Origin: Schizochytrium sp. TIO01
Lineage: Eukaryota > Protista > Bigyra: Labyrinthulomycetes
Reading direction: 5' to 3'
DNA: 64,000 bases
NCBI GenBank assembly: GCA_004764695.1
Contig: SMSO01000011.1
Span: 61,638 to 125,637, forward strand
The notes beneath the pieces are model-generated. The model was not told the DNA's origin, did not search any database, and saw only the letters and a program-made list of their open reading frames with translations. Below are positions 10,701-23,606 of the stretch, in pieces. Position 1 is the first letter of the stretch. Each line of letters opens with the position of its first letter. Position numbers and translations under genes: made by a program.

Positions 10701-12809
10701 GAACACGCTAGTCATCCGAAACTAAATCACAATGACCGTGAATCCAGTAGTGAACACGCTAGTCATCCGAAACTAAATCACAATGACCGTGAATCCAGTA
10801 GTGAACACGCTAGTCATCCGGAACAAAATCACAATGACCGTGAATCCAATAGTGAACACGTTAGTCATTCTGAGGTAAATAATGATGACCGTGAATCCAA
10901 AAGTGAACATGCTCGTGAAGACATGGAACTAGAACATAGTTCAGTCCATGCACACGATAGTCATCGGAGATCCAAAAGGACTCCCAAACCTCATGTACCA
11001 CTAAATGTTGGTCCCAGTGCCAAAGGCGCTGCAAATAAATACCGATACTATACCAATCGTCTGAAACGAAAACGTAATATGACGAATACAGAGTTAGATT
11101 TCTCGGATATTAATTCTCTATCAAAAGAAGAGAACTTACATGAACTAATCATTCCCACGATATATCCGAGGGAACAGGAATATTTTGCTTTTCTTATTAA
11201 AAACAACACAGATAATAAACAATTACCTAAACCGGTCCCAAAACCATGTCCATATGACGACATTGTAGTTCCAAACACTTATAAAGAAATGCGGAAACTG
11301 CCACAGGCATATCAGCAACTATGGATTGCTGCGATGAATACTGAACATCACAATCTGCAGTCCGCTGGTGTTCTGGAAACTGTACCCTTACACACTTTAC
11401 CACAGGGACAGACTGTAATGGGAACTAGATGGGTCTTTACAAAGAAGGCACCACCGGTCAATCTGTTAAAAGCACGGGTTGTAGTACAAGGCTACAATGA
11501 GGCCATTGAACATGTTTATGATATATACTCACCAACAGTTAATGTTGAAAGCATTCGTGTTGCAACAATTATTGCTTTAACGAGAGGCTATGATGCTATC
11601 ACCGTTGACGTAACAGCCGCATTTCTAGAAGCACAAATTCCAGATGACGAATTCCTCTACATCAAAGGCATTGAAGGTCTTGACTTAGCAGAAGGTTATT
11701 GTTATCGTCTGCGTAAAAGTCTATATGGACTCAAAAGTGCCCCCCGTAGGTGGATGGATCATTTGACGGCTATATTAGAAAATTATGGCTTAACACGATC
11801 TATAACGGACGCATCACTCTTTATTGGCAAAGATCTTCTAATGACTATCCATGTTGATGACATGAGAATCTTTGGCACACCCCAAGCACTAAAAGCGATT
11901 GTCAAAGAACTTGAACAAAATGTCGGCGTCAAAGTTAATCGTGAAAAACAATGCCATTATCTTAGTGATACACATGTCTATGACAAGTCACGAAAGATCT
12001 GTACCATCAGCCAACGCGAGTATTGTGGAAAAGCCCTTAGGCGATGTAATATGGAAAACTGCAATGGAGCTAAAACTCCATCCATCCTTAAAGAGTTAAG
12101 TGATCATCCTGACGACTCTGTGAATGAACACTATCGTCCACTTGTTGGCACTCTAATGTATTTACTAAAAACTCGACCTGATATGGCATACACTTTACAC
12201 CAACTTGCATGCCATGGTCAAAAGAATGGAGCGGAACATATGCAAGCTCTTAAACATGCATTCCGTTATGTCAAGGCCACAAAGGACAAAGTTCTAACAC
12301 TCAAAGGCGTGGATTCAGAGGCACAACTTGTTTTGAATGTCTATACAGATGCTTCTTTCAGCAAGGCACATGACAAACTTCGTCGTAGTGTTACAGGATA
12401 TGTTGTTATGATAAATGATAGTGCTGTTGTATGGAAAACAACCAAACAGTCTACAGTTGCAAGAAATACTCACGAAGCTGAACTAATTGCTGCAGTTGCA
12501 GGAGTTCTCAGAGCAGAATCCATTCGACAACTTTTAGCAGACATGAACATTTACATCAATGAAATACAGGTATATATAGATTGTCAAGCATTAGTAAACA
12601 CAATCAAAAAGGAAGAAGTTAATGGTACAAATGGTTATCTCGCAGTACAACTTGCAGTACTGATTCATCGAAGACAAAACCAATTACTCAAGGTACATCA
12701 TGTTAAAGGCACAGAAAATATAGCTGATTTACTCACCAAACCACTTGCAGCACCATCTCATTGGAAACACGCGAGTCGCTTACTTGATGCTTCAGGTGCT
12801 GACGCGTGA
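7773..12809 (+). CDS. Copia gag-pol polyprotein (1678 aa)
   Basis: Two CCHC knuckles (CSHCGYSNHAEANC, CPICNQVGHRPSVC). Protease-like FLLNSGCNLH. Integrase HHCC (HLKLGH...CMDC) and DDE (ADVMGP, IRTDGA, PAEGINR). RT motifs KARVVVQG, DVTAAFL, KSLYGLK, HVDD. RNase H motifs YTDASF, EAEL, IADLLTK. Confidence 0.97.
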   Translation: MSSVRESKRNRTNQAANSESQSALSAEEVQKIQEKLEKYKRLYEESQRTKDHLKDSDYDDDLEYLNDDSSRKRQSRSRSSFRTTDRTRDILIDRINKIPTGPSLDLMGSNWETWSANVLRYMDHHGCTPEEIEATTDPKRQRLLDSALFTLLSNQAGPNFQKQLLHYGKSHHGHEGRAAWAQLQIAFKKQPGETNLDKVTALLQCLRKYLDNSLESMSENEIMVWFMELYNTQCELLATGMTLHDYMFILNLLPHIRYMGPQTTAIYGKAIKLKEYSKELFQELRNTEREVAQQCTLKGKSGYSAGNPEPTHLQANSFHPSRNKFKRQKRPTSQNNNSGGAQQPFPQRNKCSHCGYSNHAEANCKFLTAICPICNQVGHRPSVCPRRSSRQQKSNNKRQRHNSTPPYKGLALHNAPFDQGPFHANFSVNLLTINHLKSEPKSAETTSEGFLLNSGCNLHVTPNLALLSNYENINPLSMDAAQGSSVPILGKGTLEARVRSTSGRIVPLTLTVYYAPSLAHTLLSTSIMTQQGFSFFFSQDSDRMTTPHGEVITLGQQSDIPMLIPVKAPKVNALQLRKAQKLSYKGIDWLEAHLKLGHASIPRIASSIGVSASQIDFLCMDCKVANFERIPVTKGPHTPYAKSPRQAVTADVMGPFHVLGIPNKFKYAIVYRDLYSDFTYVYPIQSTDQVSTTLRTFAQAWLQGKNTSRIIIRTDGAKYFTGGEFARSLHTMRWEHKLSAPHSHATNPAEGINRVLMNGLRSNLKTALLGAKYWPYALSHAVHVKNRTASSRNRKSPYERHFGKAPEYSYFHIFGAPCVFKKFPIPQKLGDRGELGIFLGYADSYTHGTVHVLPKDKSNILQTREVKIFDQALTEQTRQRAMSIETALTPDLITHWTREESNKLIAGEMYQDLPALSSTANNTKSFLTPNTPEYNDDRESNSEHASRPEVNNDDRESSSEHASRLEANHHDRESNSEHASHPKLNHNDRESSSEHASHPKLNHNDRESSSEHASHPEQNHNDRESNSEHVSHSEVNNDDRESKSEHAREDMELEHSSVHAHDSHRRSKRTPKPHVPLNVGPSAKGAANKYRYYTNRLKRKRNMTNTELDFSDINSLSKEENLHELIIPTIYPREQEYFAFLIKNNTDNKQLPKPVPKPCPYDDIVVPNTYKEMRKLPQAYQQLWIAAMNTEHHNLQSAGVLETVPLHTLPQGQTVMGTRWVFTKKAPPVNLLKARVVVQGYNEAIEHVYDIYSPTVNVESIRVATIIALTRGYDAITVDVTAAFLEAQIPDDEFLYIKGIEGLDLAEGYCYRLRKSLYGLKSAPRRWMDHLTAILENYGLTRSITDASLFIGKDLLMTIHVDDMRIFGTPQALKAIVKELEQNVGVKVNREKQCHYLSDTHVYDKSRKICTISQREYCGKALRRCNMENCNGAKTPSILKELSDHPDDSVNEHYRPLVGTLMYLLKTRPDMAYTLHQLACHGQKNGAEHMQALKHAFRYVKATKDKVLTLKGVDSEAQLVLNVYTDASFSKAHDKLRRSVTGYVVMINDSAVVWKTTKQSTVARNTHEAELIAAVAGVLRAESIRQLLADMNIYINEIQVYIDCQALVNTIKKEEVNGTNGYLAVQLAVLIHRRQNQLLKVHHVKGTENIADLLTKPLAAPSHWKHASRLLDASGADA
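10575..10915 (+). repeat. In-frame 51-bp (17-aa) tandem repeat, ~6.7 copies, in the integrase-RT linker
   Basis: NDDRESNSEHASRPEVN / NDDRESSSEHASRLEAN / HHDRESNSEHASHPKLN / HNDRESSSEHASHPKLN / HNDRESSSEHASHPEQN / HNDRESNSEHVSHSEVN / NDDRESKSEHAR. Confidence 0.9.
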
Positions 12810-12821
12810 TTTGCGGGGGAG

Positions 12822-13018
12822 TATTGAAGTAATATACAGCTACTGTCTAACCTAACCTAACCTAACCTAACCAAGCTCTCCTATCCACACATTAACCTGC
12901 CTGTATGCAGACCTGAAACCCCGATAACTCATATATCATCCTCTTTCTCTTTCTCCTGAGTTCGTCATCCTTGTCAGACTACCTCTCCACGCTTCACAGC
13001 ACAGGCTACTCTGCAATA
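12822..13018 (+). repeat. 3' LTR (197 bp), contains CTAA(CCTAA)4
   Basis: Direct repeat of the 5' LTR, preceded by the PPT and followed by the TSD GTATT. Confidence 0.95.
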
Positions 13019-13178
13019 GTATTCAATGAAAATGTTTCCATCACCTACACACTCTATATTATAATTAATATTTTCTAGCACAATCAAAATCCTATGAATC
13101 TATAAAATAGTAATATCATTTCTGTAGTTTTACATACAAGCAACAAGGTTTAACAAAAAAAAAAATTCAGAACTTCTT

Positions 13179-16100
13179 TTATTCAAAAATATAAGGGCCT
13201 AGACATCCCAATGCTTCACTAAAGGCAACATTTGCAGCTTTCAACATATCAAGCTCTACTTTCTGCGCAGCAATATAGTCCTCTTTTGAAATCAGCATAC
13301 CAGACCTGTTCGCAAGCCGACCTTGGGCAAGAAGACTATGCTGCACTGAAAACGGCAGAGAAAGTGCATCGTTTACAACATGTATACAACGAAGCTCACG
13401 AGATACCTGTATAAGACTTGTCCTTCTTGTCTTTGCAGAACAAATTTGCTTATTCAATTCGAGCTCCTCGCGCATTTCAATCATCTCCCAGGTCATTCTA
13501 GTACCAGTAAAACCCAAATGACATCAACTCCGTTCGTCAGTTTACAATTTTTTATTTTTTTTGTCATTAAAAGGTACCCACAGTACTGCCAGTACAGTTT
13601 CATTTATTCTCTGATGTTATCATGCTCTCTGTTAGATCCACACTCAACCAAACATTCAACTCCACAACAAACTTGCAATGGCGCGAAGAAAAACATCGGC
13701 AAAATAACACACTAGACAACCCACGAAGCAACGAACCAACCAACTAACCAAGCCTCGTGTACAAACGAGTCCATAAACTACGGTGTTACTAAGTTAACTT
13801 ACGATAGTGATGTCAGCGACCGGTTCTCTTTCAGCGCCGCAGCCACTGCCTTGGCGCCCTCTGAGCCGATTTTGTTGTAGGAAAGACTGTCGATTTGATT
13901 GAATGATGGCAAGCAATACATTACACGTTACATATTACAATAGATGCACGCATGCATGCATGGACGTGAGTGATCTAGGTTGACTTTCAGGATTTATCTT
14001 TGTTGTGTTGTCATTTTGCTCTTTGTTCGATGGATGTATACTCACTCAAACAGACAACCCATCCATCCATCAAACAAACAAGCGATTGCATAAACTTGCA
14101 AAACAACACCGACCCACCCACCGAACAACAAACCAATCATCATGTACAAACAAGTCCACGAGCTGGGGTGTTGCGTAGACAACTTACTCAAGTAATGTCA
14201 GCGACCGGTTCTCTTTCAGCGCCGCAGCCACTGCCTTGGCGCCCTCGTCGCCGATCTGGTTGCGTTCAAGACTGTCGATTTGATTGAATGATGGCAAGCA
14301 ATACATTACACGTTACATATTACAATAGATGCACGCATGCATGCATGGACGTGAGTGATCTAGGTTGGCTTTCAGCACTTATCTTTGTTGTGTTGTCATT
14401 TTGCTCTTTGTTCGATGGATGTATACTCACTCAAACAGACAACCCATCCATCCATCAAACAAACAAGCGATTGCATAAACTTGCAAAACAACACCGACCC
14501 ACCCACCAAACAACAAACCAAGCATCATGTACAAACAAGTTCACGAGCTGCGGTGTTGCGTAGACAACTTACTCAAGTGATGTCAGCGACAGGTTCTCTT
14601 TCAGCGCCGCAGCCACTGCCTTGGCGCCCTCGTCGCCGATCTGGTTGTCAGAAACACTGTCGATTTGATTGAATGATGGCAAGCAATACATTACACGTTA
14701 CATATTACAATAGATGCACGCATGCATGCATGGACGTGAGTGATCTAGGTTGGCTTTCAGCACTTATCTTTGTTGTGTTGTCATTTTGCTCTTTGTTCGA
14801 TGGATGTATACTCACTCAAACAGACAACTCATCCATCCATCAAACAAACAAGCGATTGCATAAACTTGCAAAACAACACCGACCCACCCACCGAACAACA
14901 AACCAAGCATCATGTACACACAAGCCCATGAGCTGCGGTGTTGCGTAGACAACTTACTCAAGTGATGTCAGCGCCCGGTTCTCTTTCAGCGCCGCACCCA
15001 CTGCCTTGGCGCCCTCGTCGCCGATATTGTTGTAGGAAAGACTGTCGATTTGATTGAATGATGGCAAGCAATACATTACACGTTACATATTACAATAGAT
15101 GCACGCATGCATGCATGGACGTGAGTGATCTAGGTTGGCTTTCAGCATTTATCTTTGTTGTGTTGTCATTTTGCTCTTTGTTCGATGGATGTATACTCAC
15201 TCAAACAGACAACTCATCCATCCATCAAACAAACAAGCCATTGCATAAACTTGCAAAACAAGACCGACCCACCCACCAAACAACAAACCAAAAATCATGT
15301 ACAGACAAGTCCACGAGCTGCGGTGTTGCGTAGACAACTTACGATAGTGATGTCAGCGACCGGTTCTCTTTCAGCGCCGCACCCACTGCCTTGGCGCCCT
15401 CGTCGCCGATATCGTTGCCAGCAAGACTGTCGATTTGATTGAATGATGGCAAGCAATACATTACACGTTACACATTACAATAGATGCACGCATGCATGCA
15501 TGGACGTGAGTGATCTAGGTTGGCTTTCAGCATTTAGCTTTCTTGTGTTGTCATTTTGCTCTTTGTTCGATGGATGTATACTCACTCAAACAGACAACCC
15601 ATCCATCCATCAAACAAACAAGCCATTGCATAAACTTGCAAAACAACACCGACCCACCCACCAAACAACAAACCAAAAATCATGTACAAACAAGTCCACG
15701 AGCTGCGGTGTTGCGTAGACAACTTACGATAGTGATGTCAGCGACCGGTTCTCTTTCAGCGCCGAAGCCACTGCCTTGGCGCCCTCGTCGCCGATTTTGT
15801 TCCTTCTAAAACTGTCGATTCGATTGAATGATGGCAAGCAATACATTACACGTTACATATTACAATAGATGTACGCATGCATGCATGGACGTGAGTGATC
15901 TAGGTTGGCTTTCAGCATTTAGCTTTGTTGTGTTGTCATTTTGCTCTTTGTTCGATGGATGTATACTCACTCAAACAGACAACTTATCCATCCATCAAAC
16001 AAACAAGCGATTGCATAAACTTGCAAAACAAGACCGACCCACCCACCAAACGACAAACCAAGCATCATGTACAAACAAGTCCACGAGCTGCGGTGTTGCG

Positions 16101-18250
16101 TAGACAACTTACTATAGTGATGTCAGCGACCGGTTCTCTTTCAGCGCCGCAGCCACTGCCTTGGCGCCCTCTGAGCCGATATAGTTGCGTTCAAGACTGT
16201 CGATTTGATTGAATGATGGCAAGCAATACATTACATTGTATTGGATAGAACCATGCATGCAGGAACATTAGTGATCTAGGTTGGCTTTGAGGATTTCATT
16301 TTTGTTGTGTTGTCATTTTGCTCTTTGTTCGGTGGATGCATACTCAGGCAAACAGACAACTTATCCATCCATCAAACAAATAACTGATCGCACAAACTTG
16401 CAAAGCGACACCGACCAAAATAACAACCAACGAAGCAAGCATCATGTACACACAAGCCCATGAGCTGTGGTATTGCTTAGACAACTTACTTGAGTGATGT
16501 CAGCGACCAGTTGTCTTTCAACGCTGCAGCCACTGCCTTGGCGCCCTCGTCGCCGATTTTATTATCCCGAAGGCTGTTAATTTGATTGAATAATGGCAAG
16601 CAATACATTGTATTGCATTAGATGCGTGCATGGGACGTGAGTGATCTAGGTTGGCTTTCAGGATTTCATCTTGGTTCGATGGTTGCATACTCACTCAAAT
16701 AGACAAATTATCCATCCATCAAACAAACAAGTGATTGCATAAACTTGCAAAACAACACCGACCAAATCAGCACACCAACAAAGCAAGCATCATGTACAAA
16801 CAAACCCATGACCTGCGGTGTTGCGTAGACAACTTACACAAGTGATGTCAGCGACCGGTTCTCTTTCAGCGCCGCAGCCACTGCCTTGGCGCCCTCTGAG
16901 CCGATATTGTTTTTACTAAAACTGTCGATTTGATTGAATGATGGCAAGCAATACATTACACGTTACATATTACAATAGATGCACGCATGCATGCATGGAC
17001 GTGAGTGATCTAGGTTGGCTTTCAGGATTTAGCTTTGTTGTGTTGTCATTTTGCTCTTTGTTCGATAAATGTATACTCCCTCAAACAGACAACTCATCCA
17101 TCCATCAAACAAACAAGCCATTGCATATACTTGCAAAACAACACCGACCCACCCACCAAACAACAAACCAAAAATCATGTACAGACAAGTCCACGAGCTG
17201 CGGTGTTGCGTAGACAACTTACACAAGTGATGTCAGCGACCGGTTCTCTTTCAGCGCCGCACCCACTGCCTTGGCGCCCTCGTCGCCGATATCGTTGCCA
17301 TAAAGACTGTCGATTTGATTGAATGATGGCAAGCAATACATTACACGTTACATATTACAATAGATGCACGCATGCATGCATGGACGTGAGTGATCTAGGT
17401 TGGCTTTCAGGATTCATCTTTGTTGTGTTGCCATTTTGCTCTTTGTTCGATGGATGTGTACTCACTCAAACAGACAACTCATCCATCCATCAAACAAACA
17501 AGCCATTGCATAAACTTGCAAAACAAGACCGACCCACCCACCAAACAACAAACCAAACATCATGTACAAACAAACCCATGACCTGCGGTGTTGCGTAGAC
17601 AACTTACTCAAGTGATGTCAGCGACTGGTTCTCTTTCAGCGCCGCACCCACTGCCTTGCCGCCCTCGTCGCCGATTTTGTTGCCTATAAGACTGTCGATT
17701 TGATTGAATGATGGCAATCAATACATTCCACGTTACATATTACAATAGATGCACGCATGCATGCATGGACGTGAGTGATCTAGCCTGACTTTCAGCATTT
17801 ATCTTTGTTGTGTTGTCATTTTGCTCTTTGTTCGATGGATGTATACTCACTCAAACAGACAACTCATCCATCCATCAAACAAACAAGCGATTGCATAAAC
17901 TTGCAAAACAAGACCGACCCACCCACCAAACAGCAAACCAAACATCATGTACAAACAAGTCCACGAGCTGCGGTGTTGCGTAGACAACTTACTATAGTGA
18001 TGTCAGCGACCGGTTCTCTTTCAGTGCCGAAGCCACTGCCTTGGCGCCCTCTGAGCCGATTTTGTTGTAGGAAAGACTATCGATTTGATTGAATGATGGC
18101 AAGCAATACATTACACGTTACATATTACAATAGATGCAATAGATGCAATAAATGCAGGCATGCATGCATGGACGTGAGTGATCTAGGTTGGCTTTCAGGA
18201 TTTATCTTTGTTGTCTTGTCATTTTCCTCTTTGATTAATGCATAATCAAT

Positions 18251-18291
<41 letters not shown>

Positions 18292-18368
18292 GTGTTAACT
18301 TACCTCAATGTTGTAGCGCCATTCTGAAGCTTTTCAAGAGCAGCGAGAACACGTGGATGGTCCGACAT
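13179..18368 (-). CDS. 14-exon leucine-rich-repeat protein (~463 aa; 12 RI/NLRC3-like 28-aa LRRs, one per 84-nt exon)
   Basis: Manual splice model in transcription order: exon 1 18304-18368 (MSDHPRVLAALEKLQNGATTL); LRR exons 17993-18076, 17608-17691, 17223-17306, 16838-16921, 16490-16573, 16113-16196, 15728-15811, 15343-15426, 14958-15041, 14573-14656, 14188-14271, 13803-13886; last exon 13179-13497 (MTWEMIEMREELELNKQ...GPYIFE*). Every donor is GTAAGT, every acceptor is YAG, all introns are phase 2 and there are no internal stops. Repeat consensus xLxxNxIG(D/S)EGAKAVAAALKENRSLTSL. The terminal exons are less certain than the LRR exons. Confidence 0.9.
13750..18233. repeat. ~385-bp tandem array (12 exon+intron units; two shorter periods of 377 and 348 bp flank one diverged unit)
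   Basis: Exon low-coordinate ends fall at 13803, 14188, 14573, 14958, 15343, 15728, 16113 (385 apart), then 16490, 16838, 17223, 17608, 17993. Confidence 0.97.
18252..18291. repeat. (CAAG)n microsatellite in intron 1 of the LRR gene
   Basis: About 10 copies of CAAG. Confidence 0.9.
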
Positions 18369-20340
18369 CGCAGCAAGTAACGATCTATACCTTAACCAGT
18401 GAGCGCGTGCGTGTGCCTTTTCAGCTAAGCTCGTGGCACAGTCCCAGTCGTTGCAGAAGGTTTCGAACCTGCTGGACGTAAAGCTGCAAGTCGATGACAA
18501 GGGTTTTGCACATGGTCTGACTTACTGAGTTACTATGGTTTCCCCTAAGAAGGAGATGTTTTTTAGTGCTCTCGAAGTGAAAGGATATTTTACTATTGCG
18601 AACCTAACCTTGCCTACTCAGCCTCTGGTTCTGCATGTGCTGACCTCGCTCTTTCAAGACTATTCCTATTTCCTAAAGCCTACTCCTAGAATATGTTTTG
18701 CAGGGATGCTTGCTGCAGAGGTTCCACTACCACTCTCTCCTAATACTACCTATCTTGCACCTAAGTCGTCAAAAAAGTAAGTAAGTGACTATCAAATTAA
18801 TGATACGTATAAATCCATCATGCACCATCTCCTTAGCACATTCGATCATACCACGCGGGTAACACTTCATCTCATTCGCACTGAGAAGTAAAGTCGCGTA
18901 GGGCCGGGTCAGTAGTATGATAGGGGACTGCATGCGAAGCCCCGGTGTTGAATGTTTTTTCCTCCGTTTATTTTTTTACCTTTGCTTATCAACAAAGCAA
19001 CTCCAAGGTTACCAATATTGTTTTGCAGTTTTGTTTTGGTGAGTATCTAAATTTCCTCCAGCGCATACGACGGCAAGATTGCTCACTCGTTGAAGGGATT
19101 GACATTGTGTGTTTTAATTCAACTTAATTATTTGCACACACCATCGCAAAGTTTGCATATCAATCACCAATTGTAGGAGTCAAGGGTGCAAAGTCGGCGA
19201 GAGTGGCAGCATTTTGAATGCGATGCTTTACTGTGGCTTTCAACAATATTTTGGGGCTATATACTCCAGACAAAACCAACCACTCATGCTATAGTCAGCT
19301 TCTATCCAATATTCAGTATTGCATGTATCTCCTTTTACAAGCTGTTTGCCTTTTCTATACGTAGAAAATGAAATGATTCTTGCCTTTCCCCAAAAGAAAA
19401 GTCTTCCCATTTTTTATGCCAAAATATTCTTTGAAATTGTCGACACTACGGGGCACTCGCATCTCTGCTCCTGGGATCTTTAAATATTAACGACTCATTC
19501 AGTTTTCACTAAGCAAATATGTTTTCCGCTGCTGTTTTTCTCTCAAGTCAGGCAATTGCGCTAAAAAACATCGAAAACAATACATAATCGGAAAATGATT
19601 TGCTTAAGTAAATACTTTGGTTCGTTCGTCACTTTAAACAGGTCAGTGGGTACCTAGTACTGTCGTTCTAGCAAGTCTACTACTAGTTCAATAATTAGGC
19701 GTACTCAAAGCAAATCTTGAATGAAGAGTTTGGTTCATGTGAAACTCTGGCGCGGTACATGGGACTCTATTCATTGTTAAGCAAGTCGGGAGTGAGAGGA
19801 CCTGCTGAAATGCCCGTGTGTGCAAGCCCCCCTCGTCGCCGGTCTATCTTCTTCCCTGCTGCTTCGAACTCAGGAGATTGGACTCCTTCTTGAGAACTTA
19901 CCTGTTCAACACTGCTGAAAACTCTGCCTCAGCCGCCGCTTTTGAGAGGTCTTCTCTCATCGTTCAGAAACGGAATTCTCTACAAAACGCTGAAGAAAGC
20001 GTCACTGAGTTTGTACACTCGGGGCATCTGTTGCGCAACACTAATTAATAAGACTGCTGTGAAGTCTCAGCAGAGAGAGAGTTGATGATGGAAAGGTGTT
20101 GCTTTAAGCTTTCTCCTATTCTTGAGGGCAACTCCACTACTGACAGAAATACAATTCTTATGGAGCATCGAGTCAGAGCGGCAGGGACACAAAGTCTTTT
20201 CGTACGGCACCGAAGCACCACTAATCATGAAATGAGGACAGGTCAAAGAACTAGTCAGAAGACTATCGAAACGCCTGGAAAACCAGACCGAGAAGGTGTC
20301 CAAAAGATCCTTGAAAAGATGGATGGATGGACGGGGTACT

Positions 20341-23145: not shown

Positions 23146-23217
23146 AGCTTCGACCGGGAATCGAACCCGGGACCTTGAGATTACGAATCACACGCACTAC
23201 CGCTGTGCTATCGAAGC
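23146..23217 (-). tRNA. tRNA-Thr(CGU)
   Basis: GCTTCGATAGCACAGCGGTAGTGCGTGTGATTCGTAATCTCAAGGTCCCGGGTTCGATTCCCGGTCGAAGCT: 7-bp acceptor stem, TTCGATT T-loop, anticodon CGT, downstream oligo-T. Confidence 0.93.
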
Positions 23218-23534: not shown

Positions 23535-23606
23535 AGCTTCGACCGGGAATCGAACCCGGGACCTTGAGATTACGAATCACACGCACTGCCGCTGTGCTAT
23601 CGAAGC
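23535..23606 (-). tRNA. tRNA-Thr(CGU), second copy
   Basis: Identical to the first copy except one D-loop base; followed by an oligo-T Pol III terminator. Confidence 0.93.

Follow-up and report, generated by a model that had tools for sequence, protein, structure and literature searches.

The window, by which is meant the whole 64,000-nucleotide stretch of Schizochytrium sp. TIO01 DNA that was analysed (G000:C10:61638-125637), contains an array of 385-bp tandem repeats situated between an 18S/5.8S/28S rRNA unit and a 5S rRNA gene. Tandem Repeats Finder assigned the array a period of 385, 11.8 copies and 89% matches. The original prediction, made from the DNA letters alone, proposed that the array conceals a minus-strand gene to which each repeat unit contributes one exon encoding a single leucine-rich repeat (LRR), and the sequence pattern behind this proposal was confirmed, the reading as a gene being well supported. 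The gene in the window is referred to as the window gene, and genes with the same plan, a series of LRR exons followed by an exon for a C-terminal (CT) domain, as LRR-CT genes.

Gene model and paralogue family

A regular-expression scan of the minus strand for AG, 84 nt and GTAAGT identified exactly 12 sites, one per repeat unit, and all 12 of the resulting LRR exons were preceded by ACAG and followed by GTAAGT. Read from offset 1, each 84-mer was free of stops and conformed to L..N.IG.EGAKAV.AALKEN.SLTSL, while stops were present in both other offsets; the unit that had been predicted, YAG, 84 nt and GTAAGT with a stop-free RI-type LRR between them, was thus recovered at every site. The 5' and 3' exons were phase-compatible with the array, as had also been predicted. 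Tracking of the phase exon by exon gave a coding length of 65 + 12 × 84 + 319 = 1392 nt without a stop, split codons included. The introns, in the order of transcription, measure 227, 301, 301, 301, 264, 293, 301 (six in succession) and 305 nt. The coordinates of all features are collected in Table 1.

Frame checks and searches of the window gene were performed on single exons. Four LRR exons were scanned and hit LRR_6 (PF13516) with 17.8-23.2 bits (E 6e-5 to 3e-3), scores just under the Pfam gathering cut-off of 23.4, because each exon covers only profile positions 10-24 of one repeat. Relatives in which the repeats are naturally joined scored above the cut-off (81.8 bits for P0010 and 84.4 bits for P0019). 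The 28-aa period of each exon agrees with the RI-type consensus LxxLxLxxNxI/LgxxGaxxLaxaLxxNxxL (28-29 aa).

No Pfam family was matched by the 5' or 3' exon. NACHT and NB-ARC gave no Pfam match in the 5' exon, the four scanned LRR exons or the 3' exon, and there is no room for an NTPase domain in the gene because the remaining exons are 84-nt LRRs of one sequence type. A profile search for Roc and TIR_2 found no match in the exons of the window gene or anywhere else on contig C10, and the predicted lack of NACHT and ROC domains is upheld. The N-terminus is not hydrophobic, suggesting a product that lacks a signal peptide and would be cytosolic. As judged from the sequence, the predicted protein comprises a 21-residue N-terminus, 12 LRRs and a 105-aa helical CT domain, with no enzymatic domain. 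Each unit also carries plus-strand open reading frames (ORFs) of 91-95 aa, which were rejected as coding sequences; they had no Pfam match, and 385 is not a multiple of three.

Table 1. Features of the window, and loci of two related subfamilies elsewhere in the genome
Feature	Position	Strand	Basis and remarks
Whole LRR-CT gene model	13179..18368	minus	14 exons and 13 phase-2 introns; exon scan and phase tracking
5' exon, 65 nt	18304..18368	minus	ATG at 18368; 21 codons and 2 nt of split codon; donor GTAAGT
LRR exon 1, 84 nt	17993..18076	minus	scan; Pfam LRR_6 E 9e-5
LRR exon 2, 84 nt	17608..17691	minus	scan; Pfam LRR_6 E 3e-3
LRR exon 3, 84 nt	17223..17306	minus	scan
LRR exon 4, 84 nt	16838..16921	minus	scan
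LRR exon 5, 84 nt	16490..16573	minus	scan; LRR_6 E 2e-4; divergent cassette (KDNW variant) between introns of 264 and 293 nt
LRR exon 6, 84 nt	16113..16196	minus	scan
LRR exon 7, 84 nt	15728..15811	minus	scan
LRR exon 8, 84 nt	15343..15426	minus	scan
LRR exon 9, 84 nt	14958..15041	minus	scan
LRR exon 10, 84 nt	14573..14656	minus	scan; LRR_6 E 6e-5
LRR exon 11, 84 nt	14188..14271	minus	scan
LRR exon 12, 84 nt	13803..13886	minus	scan
3' exon, 319 nt, 105-aa helical CT domain	13179..13497	minus	acceptor CTAG at 13498; TAA at 13181-13179 overlaps AATAAA
385-bp tandem array (Group 0 LORE-TEARS, by size and position)	13735..18233	no strand	Tandem Repeats Finder
18S/5.8S/28S rRNA unit	1-3797	minus	Rfam
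18S rRNA gene	2011..3797	minus	Rfam; downstream of LRR gene, same orientation
5S rRNA gene	18838..18956	plus	Rfam; divergent from LRR gene, 470 bp upstream of ATG
Intact Ty1/copia-type long terminal repeat (LTR) retrotransposon	7447-13019	plus	inserted in rDNA spacer ~160 bp past LRR gene stop
Two tRNA genes	23146-23217 and 23535-23606	minus	~4.5 kb past 5S gene
Second subfamily (P0002 type), 84-nt LRR exons	L055/L057 = G000:C31:5690076-5693414, C30:13625-16963, and at least 18 similar places		near contig ends
Third relative (P0010 type)	L058 = G000:C35:18423-21755		apparently single-copy

The 385-bp unit has at least 394 matches genome-wide, on many contigs and mostly near their ends, which bears out the predicted recurrence. 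The 3' exon was scored at 40 of 95 candidate places in the genome (85-100% identity) and the 5' exon region at 40 of 80, pointing to a family of roughly 40-95 paralogues. Arrays with terminal exons were also observed as mirror-image pairs deep in contigs of 7-10 Mb (G000:C30:5478743(+) and 5521453(-)), and further internal copies lie in C13 and C31. Chromosome ends seem to abut in the assembly, so that these internal copies may still be subtelomeric.

Twenty loci with paired 5' and 3' exons were taken from the genome, giving 21 genes with the window gene. The gene plan was identical in all 20, with 2 to 20 LRR exons per gene. The AG acceptor was kept in 264/264 LRR exons, the GT donor in 263/264 and the length of exactly 84 nt in 263/264, while the introns ranged from 259 to 548 nt. 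The frame ran unbroken through all LRR exons in 19 of the 21 genes, and stops were found in 0/263 exons in phase, whereas the two remaining phases had them in 161 and 262 of the 263, a contrast far beyond chance. The exons are protected from indels, splice-site loss and stops, unlike the introns. The original prediction had set coding cassettes against units that acquire exon stops and indels and lose GT or AG sites as fast as their introns do; the 264 exons are intact bar a few exceptions, the introns take indels and the L, N, I and G residues are fixed, as coding cassettes require.

Two related subfamilies share the CT domain. In the P0002 type the domain has 35% identity and the introns are irregular (~50-310 nt), while L058 has a CT domain of 37% identity, introns of ~180-190 nt and 84-nt LRR exons that are 100% identical to a JGI protein. 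Between near-identical duplicates with introns 0.8-1.5% different, the 5' exon was observed to differ by 8-10% over 63 compared bases (the window gene compared with L045, G000:C35:2682400-2688500, and L041 compared with L044), which points to recombination with a breakpoint separating the 5' exon from the array.

Diversity at five codons of the LRR exon

In 263 LRR exons the amino-acid entropy separated five codons, with 2.0-3.4 bits, from the remaining 23, all with <0.9 bits. The five hypervariable codons are the split codon and positions 2, 3, 5 and 8, which correspond to the x positions of L-x-L-x-x-N-x-I-G-x across the exon junction, and the scaffold residues L, N, I and G between them are fixed. 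In an RI-type LRR these x positions are the solvent-exposed sites of the beta-strand and loop on the concave face. Per-site diversity was 0.549 at the hypervariable nucleotides (15 per exon), 0.095 in the introns (297 well-aligned columns) and 0.065 in the exon scaffold. The proportions of nonsynonymous (pN) and synonymous (pS) differences, calculated by the Nei-Gojobori method, were 0.578 and 0.455 in the hypervariable codons and 0.056 and 0.089 in the scaffold.

The 263 repeats carried 209 distinct five-residue signatures, composed mainly of S, D, N, G, Y, E and R. No stop was observed at the hypervariable codons, whereas free mixing of the observed bases predicts ~84 (no fewer than 62 in any of 2000 shuffles), a generous null, given that blocks of codon states are in part inherited together. 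Differences between recent duplicates, compared in four pairs, were 6-11 times as frequent at the variable nucleotides as at intron sites (p 3e-6 to 1e-36). Exon indels were absent from the two pairs with equal LRR number, and the only exon gap in recent duplicates was one whole 84-nt exon missing from L031 relative to L033. The excess in the duplicate pairs shows ongoing reshuffling and is not proof of new point substitutions.

Five codons are diverse while bases a few positions away are homogenised, and the diverse codons are interleaved with invariant L, N, I and G, a pattern that requires selection. Such selection would act at the protein level and would be diversifying, on a surface predicted to bind ligands. 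Two further observations concern bases at the exon margins. The first base of each LRR exon, the third base of the split codon, is nearly always T (diversity 0.03), and the third base of the Leu27 codon (exon nt 82), a synonymous site, has a diversity of 0.63, like that of the adjacent hypervariable codons.

Transcripts, CT domain and ROC-COR-TIR relatives

The last exon of the window gene was used to search 1.8 billion representative proteins, transcriptome-derived sequences included. Only three relevant clusters were found, the sources of which were MMETSP transcript ORFs and JGI/Logan. Three MMETSP ORFs of 105-109 aa (P0001, P0011 and P0012) were 76-82% identical to the last exon, and P0001 ended with the same ...GPYIFE stop as the window gene. 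An ORF of 146 aa (P0006) contained 12 residues of conserved intron tail, a complete LRR exon and then the last exon directly, the latter two lying ~283 nt apart on the genome. P0006 lacks the last intron, with the splice falling at the predicted junction, and retains the preceding one wholly or in part. P0002 (MMETSP) and P0010 (JGI), from the two sister subfamilies with the same CT domain, mapped to the genome as consecutive exact 28-aa blocks of up to 100% identity, separated by introns of ~50-310 nt. The MMETSP and JGI ORFs prove transcription and splicing for the family, not for the window locus, where splicing at the same junctions is probable by analogy with P0006, P0002 and P0010.

An alignment of 25 versions of the CT domain, drawn from the window family, the two sister subfamilies and transcripts, showed L28, L35, C37, P48 and K71 to be invariant down to 27-37% identity. 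AlphaFold2 on this alignment predicted three helices (residues 3-45, 49-61 and 71-103) with a mean pLDDT of 71. Comparison with PDB by Foldseek yielded nothing below E 0.6, the best hit of a wide VIA-align search had a Z of 7.6, below the helical-bundle background, a PDB profile search gave no credible match, and only unnamed clusters with recognition below the mark were found in the ESM Atlas. A homodimer prediction scored 0.02, a score that carries no weight either way. The CT region is a conserved domain, modelled as a generic helical hairpin.

A Pfam search of the genome identified at least 14 open frames of ~850-870 aa with both Roc and TIR_2, located directly downstream of arrays and on the same strand. 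In one such gene (C35:2636300-2646200) the same 5' exon and 17 intact AG-84-GT cassettes are followed by an intron of 86 or 104 nt with a phase-compatible acceptor and by an 855-aa exon with matches to Roc (2e-18), COR-A (3e-11) and TIR_2 (5e-13). At two further loci 2-3 cassettes precede the Roc-COR-TIR module. The Roc and COR domains of a ROCO protein, together with TIR, are present in the sister genes L070 and L071 and not in the window gene. In L071 (G000:C36:4980000-4989800) two LRR exons and a CT-type last exon were observed past the ROC-COR-TIR stop, with no detectable 5' exon between; this tail is a CT gene truncated at its 5' side, or else serves as an alternative 3' end.

Cassette relatedness was compared with introns as neutral markers. 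For 43 of 243 CT-type introns the nearest relative lay in the single C35 ROCO-TIR gene, one intron of which was closest to intron 10 of the window gene (98.7%). The CT-type and ROCO-TIR architectures thus draw on one exchanging pool. The 'immune-like' element of the original prediction is strengthened by the splicing of these cassettes to Roc-COR-TIR exons at no fewer than 14 loci elsewhere in the genome, TIR being a domain characteristic of immune signalling.

Several features flank the window gene. The region of 470 bp between its ATG and the 5S gene (18369-18837) would bring an RNA polymerase II promoter and an RNA polymerase III gene into a very short intergenic space. The LTRs of the copia-type element (168 nt; 7447-7614 and 12852-13019) are 100% identical, and its ORF of 1678 aa (7773-12809) includes Pol_BBD, integrase, SH3_retrovirus and RVT_2 domains and a 51-nt tandem repeat in seven copies (10530-10988). 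The insertion looks very recent. The telomere repeat TTAGGG was not found in the window.

Interpretation and comparison with known systems

These data suggest that the array is a real intron-rich protein-coding gene belonging to a large chromosome-end family, which likely constitutes a germline repertoire of intracellular recognition proteins; a probability of about 0.7 is given to this interpretation. Under the proposed mechanism each 385-bp unit would consist of one 84-nt exon for a 28-aa RI-type LRR and one intron of ~301 nt. Because every intron is in phase 2, unequal crossing-over or gene conversion could add, remove or swap units and leave the reading frame intact; this would account for the spread from 2 to 20 LRRs among paralogues and for introns and an LRR scaffold that are almost the same from one chromosome end to the next. 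Both of these would evolve in concert among chromosome ends, selection would keep the five binding-face codons diverse against this homogenisation, and the variable face would presumably bind ligands. The same pool would also build the LRR-ROC-COR-TIR genes, and a CT-type gene might act as a sensor, adaptor or decoy with no signalling module of its own.

Several results weigh against this interpretation. Approximately 3-4 of the 21 copies look damaged, with a frameshift from a 1-nt insertion in the 5' exon of L031, a frameshift from one 85-nt LRR exon in L037, an early stop (TAA) in the last exon of L049 and one ATAAGT donor in L044; these are probably pseudogenes or cases of recent damage. 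The scaffold has a pN/pS of 0.63 and, between recent duplicates, diverges as fast as the introns do; purifying selection on it therefore shows mainly in the lack of indels and stops. Synonymous diversity is also high in the hypervariable codons, and unit exchange alone predicts a ~5.8-fold excess in recent duplicates, which therefore give no proof of new positive selection. No full-length protein of the LRR-CT type was present in the public protein sets searched. The 12 codons of upstream intron kept in P0006 may reflect incomplete splicing or a contig that is partly pre-mRNA, and no Group 0-type ORF was identical to a sampled genomic copy (best 91%), implying that their source is a different strain or species, or else paralogues outside the sample.

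The best placed of the alternatives is a real and expressed LRR family with a variable face that serves purposes other than defence, such as self/non-self or mating-type recognition, binding of endogenous partners, or maintenance of the nucleolus, rDNA or telomeres. The location of the gene inside the rDNA unit between 5S and 18S at essentially every chromosome end would suit such a role, as would a window gene with no signalling domain and a helical hairpin with no informative match. However, the same cassettes feed genes with a TIR domain, and a structural or chromosome-maintenance role does not predict 209 binding-face signatures. This alternative is considered improbable, although it deserves more weight than those that follow.

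It is very unlikely that the hypervariability is purely mutational or recombinational in origin, with short-tract unit exchange or a hotspot near the acceptor preserving old variants to no benefit of the protein. The odds ratios of 6-11 in the duplicate pairs are close to the diversity ratio of 5.8 that unit exchange predicts, and the Leu27 third base and the synonymous sites of the hypervariable codons are also very diverse. Yet a regional hotspot would not produce the codon-by-codon interleaving of variable and invariant positions (x L x x N x I G x), neutral exchange should have homogenised the hypervariable codons like their near neighbours, and the missing stops and a residue set typical of binding surfaces are not accounted for. 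Finally, a non-functional spacer satellite seeded by an LRR gene fragment, with a residual gene-like appearance, is largely refuted despite the publication of the repeat as a non-coding spacer and the broken copies, since 263-264 of 264 units preserve the length of the exon, its splice sites and its frame among introns of such variable length, complete start and stop exons are conserved at at least 40 loci, transcript ORFs contain a spliced junction and the CT domain is conserved across subfamilies.

For the family of coding LRR genes, the cassettes held in common with the ROC-COR-TIR genes make recognition or defence the leading hypothesis as to function, and it is advanced tentatively, at somewhat less than even odds. 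A much bolder proposal, and one that is doubtful at present, is that the LRR-CT and LRR-ROC-COR-TIR genes form one diversification system in which about 100 arrays, subtelomeric and linked to rDNA, continually trade phase-2 cassettes with one another. The CT genes would then be cassette reservoirs, partners or decoys for TIR-signalling receptors, in-frame exon skipping would possibly add isoforms, and the whole would be a protist counterpart of a VLR- or var-style repertoire, plausibly aimed at mirusviruses. Aurantiochytrium limacinum hosts persistent mirusviruses.

If the interpretation as genes is correct, a published class of non-coding chromosome-end spacers is to be re-read as genes, and a model marine protist with persistent mirusviruses gains a family of hypervariable LRR genes about 100 strong. 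It would offer a concrete explanation for the uniformity of chromosome-end repeats and open the origin of LRR-based recognition beyond animals and plants to direct testing. In practical terms, intron-rich genes can hide in regular satellites, where they are missed by gene callers and repeat maskers.

The repeat itself has a published counterpart. The original prediction had referred to a report of LORE-TEARS repeats at Aurantiochytrium chromosome ends, and this report exists: the Group 0 LORE-TEARS of Aurantiochytrium limacinum MYA-1381 consist of ~9 units of ~385 bp between the telomere-proximal 18S and the nearest 5S gene (bioRxiv 10.1101/2023.06.15.545109). They were read as a spacer with no GenBank similarity, in a text that includes neither 'leucine' nor 'LRR', and a maintenance role related to rDNA or telomeres was proposed by the authors (bioRxiv 10.1101/2023.06.15.545109). 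The window array agrees in period, approximate copy number and location between 18S and 5S, a match judged by size and position; in both, transcription of the rDNA runs toward the telomere and that of the 5S gene away from it. The difference is that the units are here read as the exon-intron units of genes. The LORE-TEARS work was reportedly published as Collier et al., Curr Biol 2023. LRRs also go unmentioned in the later Aurantiochytrium papers examined, and a targeted literature search gave no paper on the subject.

The closest parallel in design is that of the brown algae. In the LRR-ROCO genes of Ectocarpus each LRR is one 72-nt exon, exons are shuffled and the concave face is under positive selection (PMC3341825), and exon shuffling is described for brown-algal LRR-ROCO genes more widely (PMC3341825; PMC11378527). 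Both systems have one LRR per exon, equal exon length, symmetric phase, gain, loss and shuffling of exons and variation on the concave face; both concern candidate immune receptors of stramenopiles, and the ROC-COR module is present in the sister genes described here. The Ectocarpus repeat, however, is a 24-aa GxxPxxLxxxxxLxxLxLxxNxLx, whereas the 84-nt exons are RI-type. The introns here are also conserved, producing a regular 385-bp repeat under concerted evolution, the genes lie inside subtelomeric rDNA units, and the effector is TIR or, in the window gene, only the 105-aa helical tail with no ROC-COR. The thraustochytrids would be, alongside and independently of the brown algae, a second group of stramenopiles whose candidate receptor repertoire is diversified through cassettes of one LRR per exon, with RI-type repeats, TIR effectors and an interleaving with rDNA at chromosome ends as the new elements.

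Another thraustochytrid, Hondaea fermentalgiana, has LRR_6-Roc-COR-TIR proteins (P0015 and P0019), automatically named 'LRRK2', 'NOD2' or 'NLRP1' at NCBI. Their 28-aa repeat, NxIGDxGAKALAxALxKNxSLQTLxL, varies at the same x positions, and they are 46% identical to the ROC-COR-TIR exon of the sister genes. They differ in combining 4-6 LRRs with ROC-COR-TIR, the comparison being one of proteins, and no Hondaea protein with the CT domain was found in the last-exon search of the protein sets.

The LRR regions of the vertebrate RI and NLR proteins (RNH1, NLRC3 and NLRP), which are intracellular, are built of RI-type repeats of 28/29 aa encoded by modular phase-symmetric exons. The window gene, the product of which is likewise predicted to be intracellular, shares this repeat type and exon design but differs in lacking NACHT, in having one repeat per exon rather than an A/B pair, and in belonging to a family of very high copy number under concerted evolution. 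In the lamprey, an incomplete germline VLR gene is completed by somatic copying of flanking cassettes, and the product has a signal peptide and LRRNT and LRRCT caps. The LRR-CT genes resemble the VLRs and the subtelomeric contingency families (var and VSG) in features that include an LRR-only variable binding protein, cassette exchange by gene conversion and a recombination-prone subtelomere. In contrast to the VLR, the window gene is already complete in the germline and its product has neither signal peptide nor LRRNT/LRRCT caps; the diversity described here is germline diversity between paralogues.

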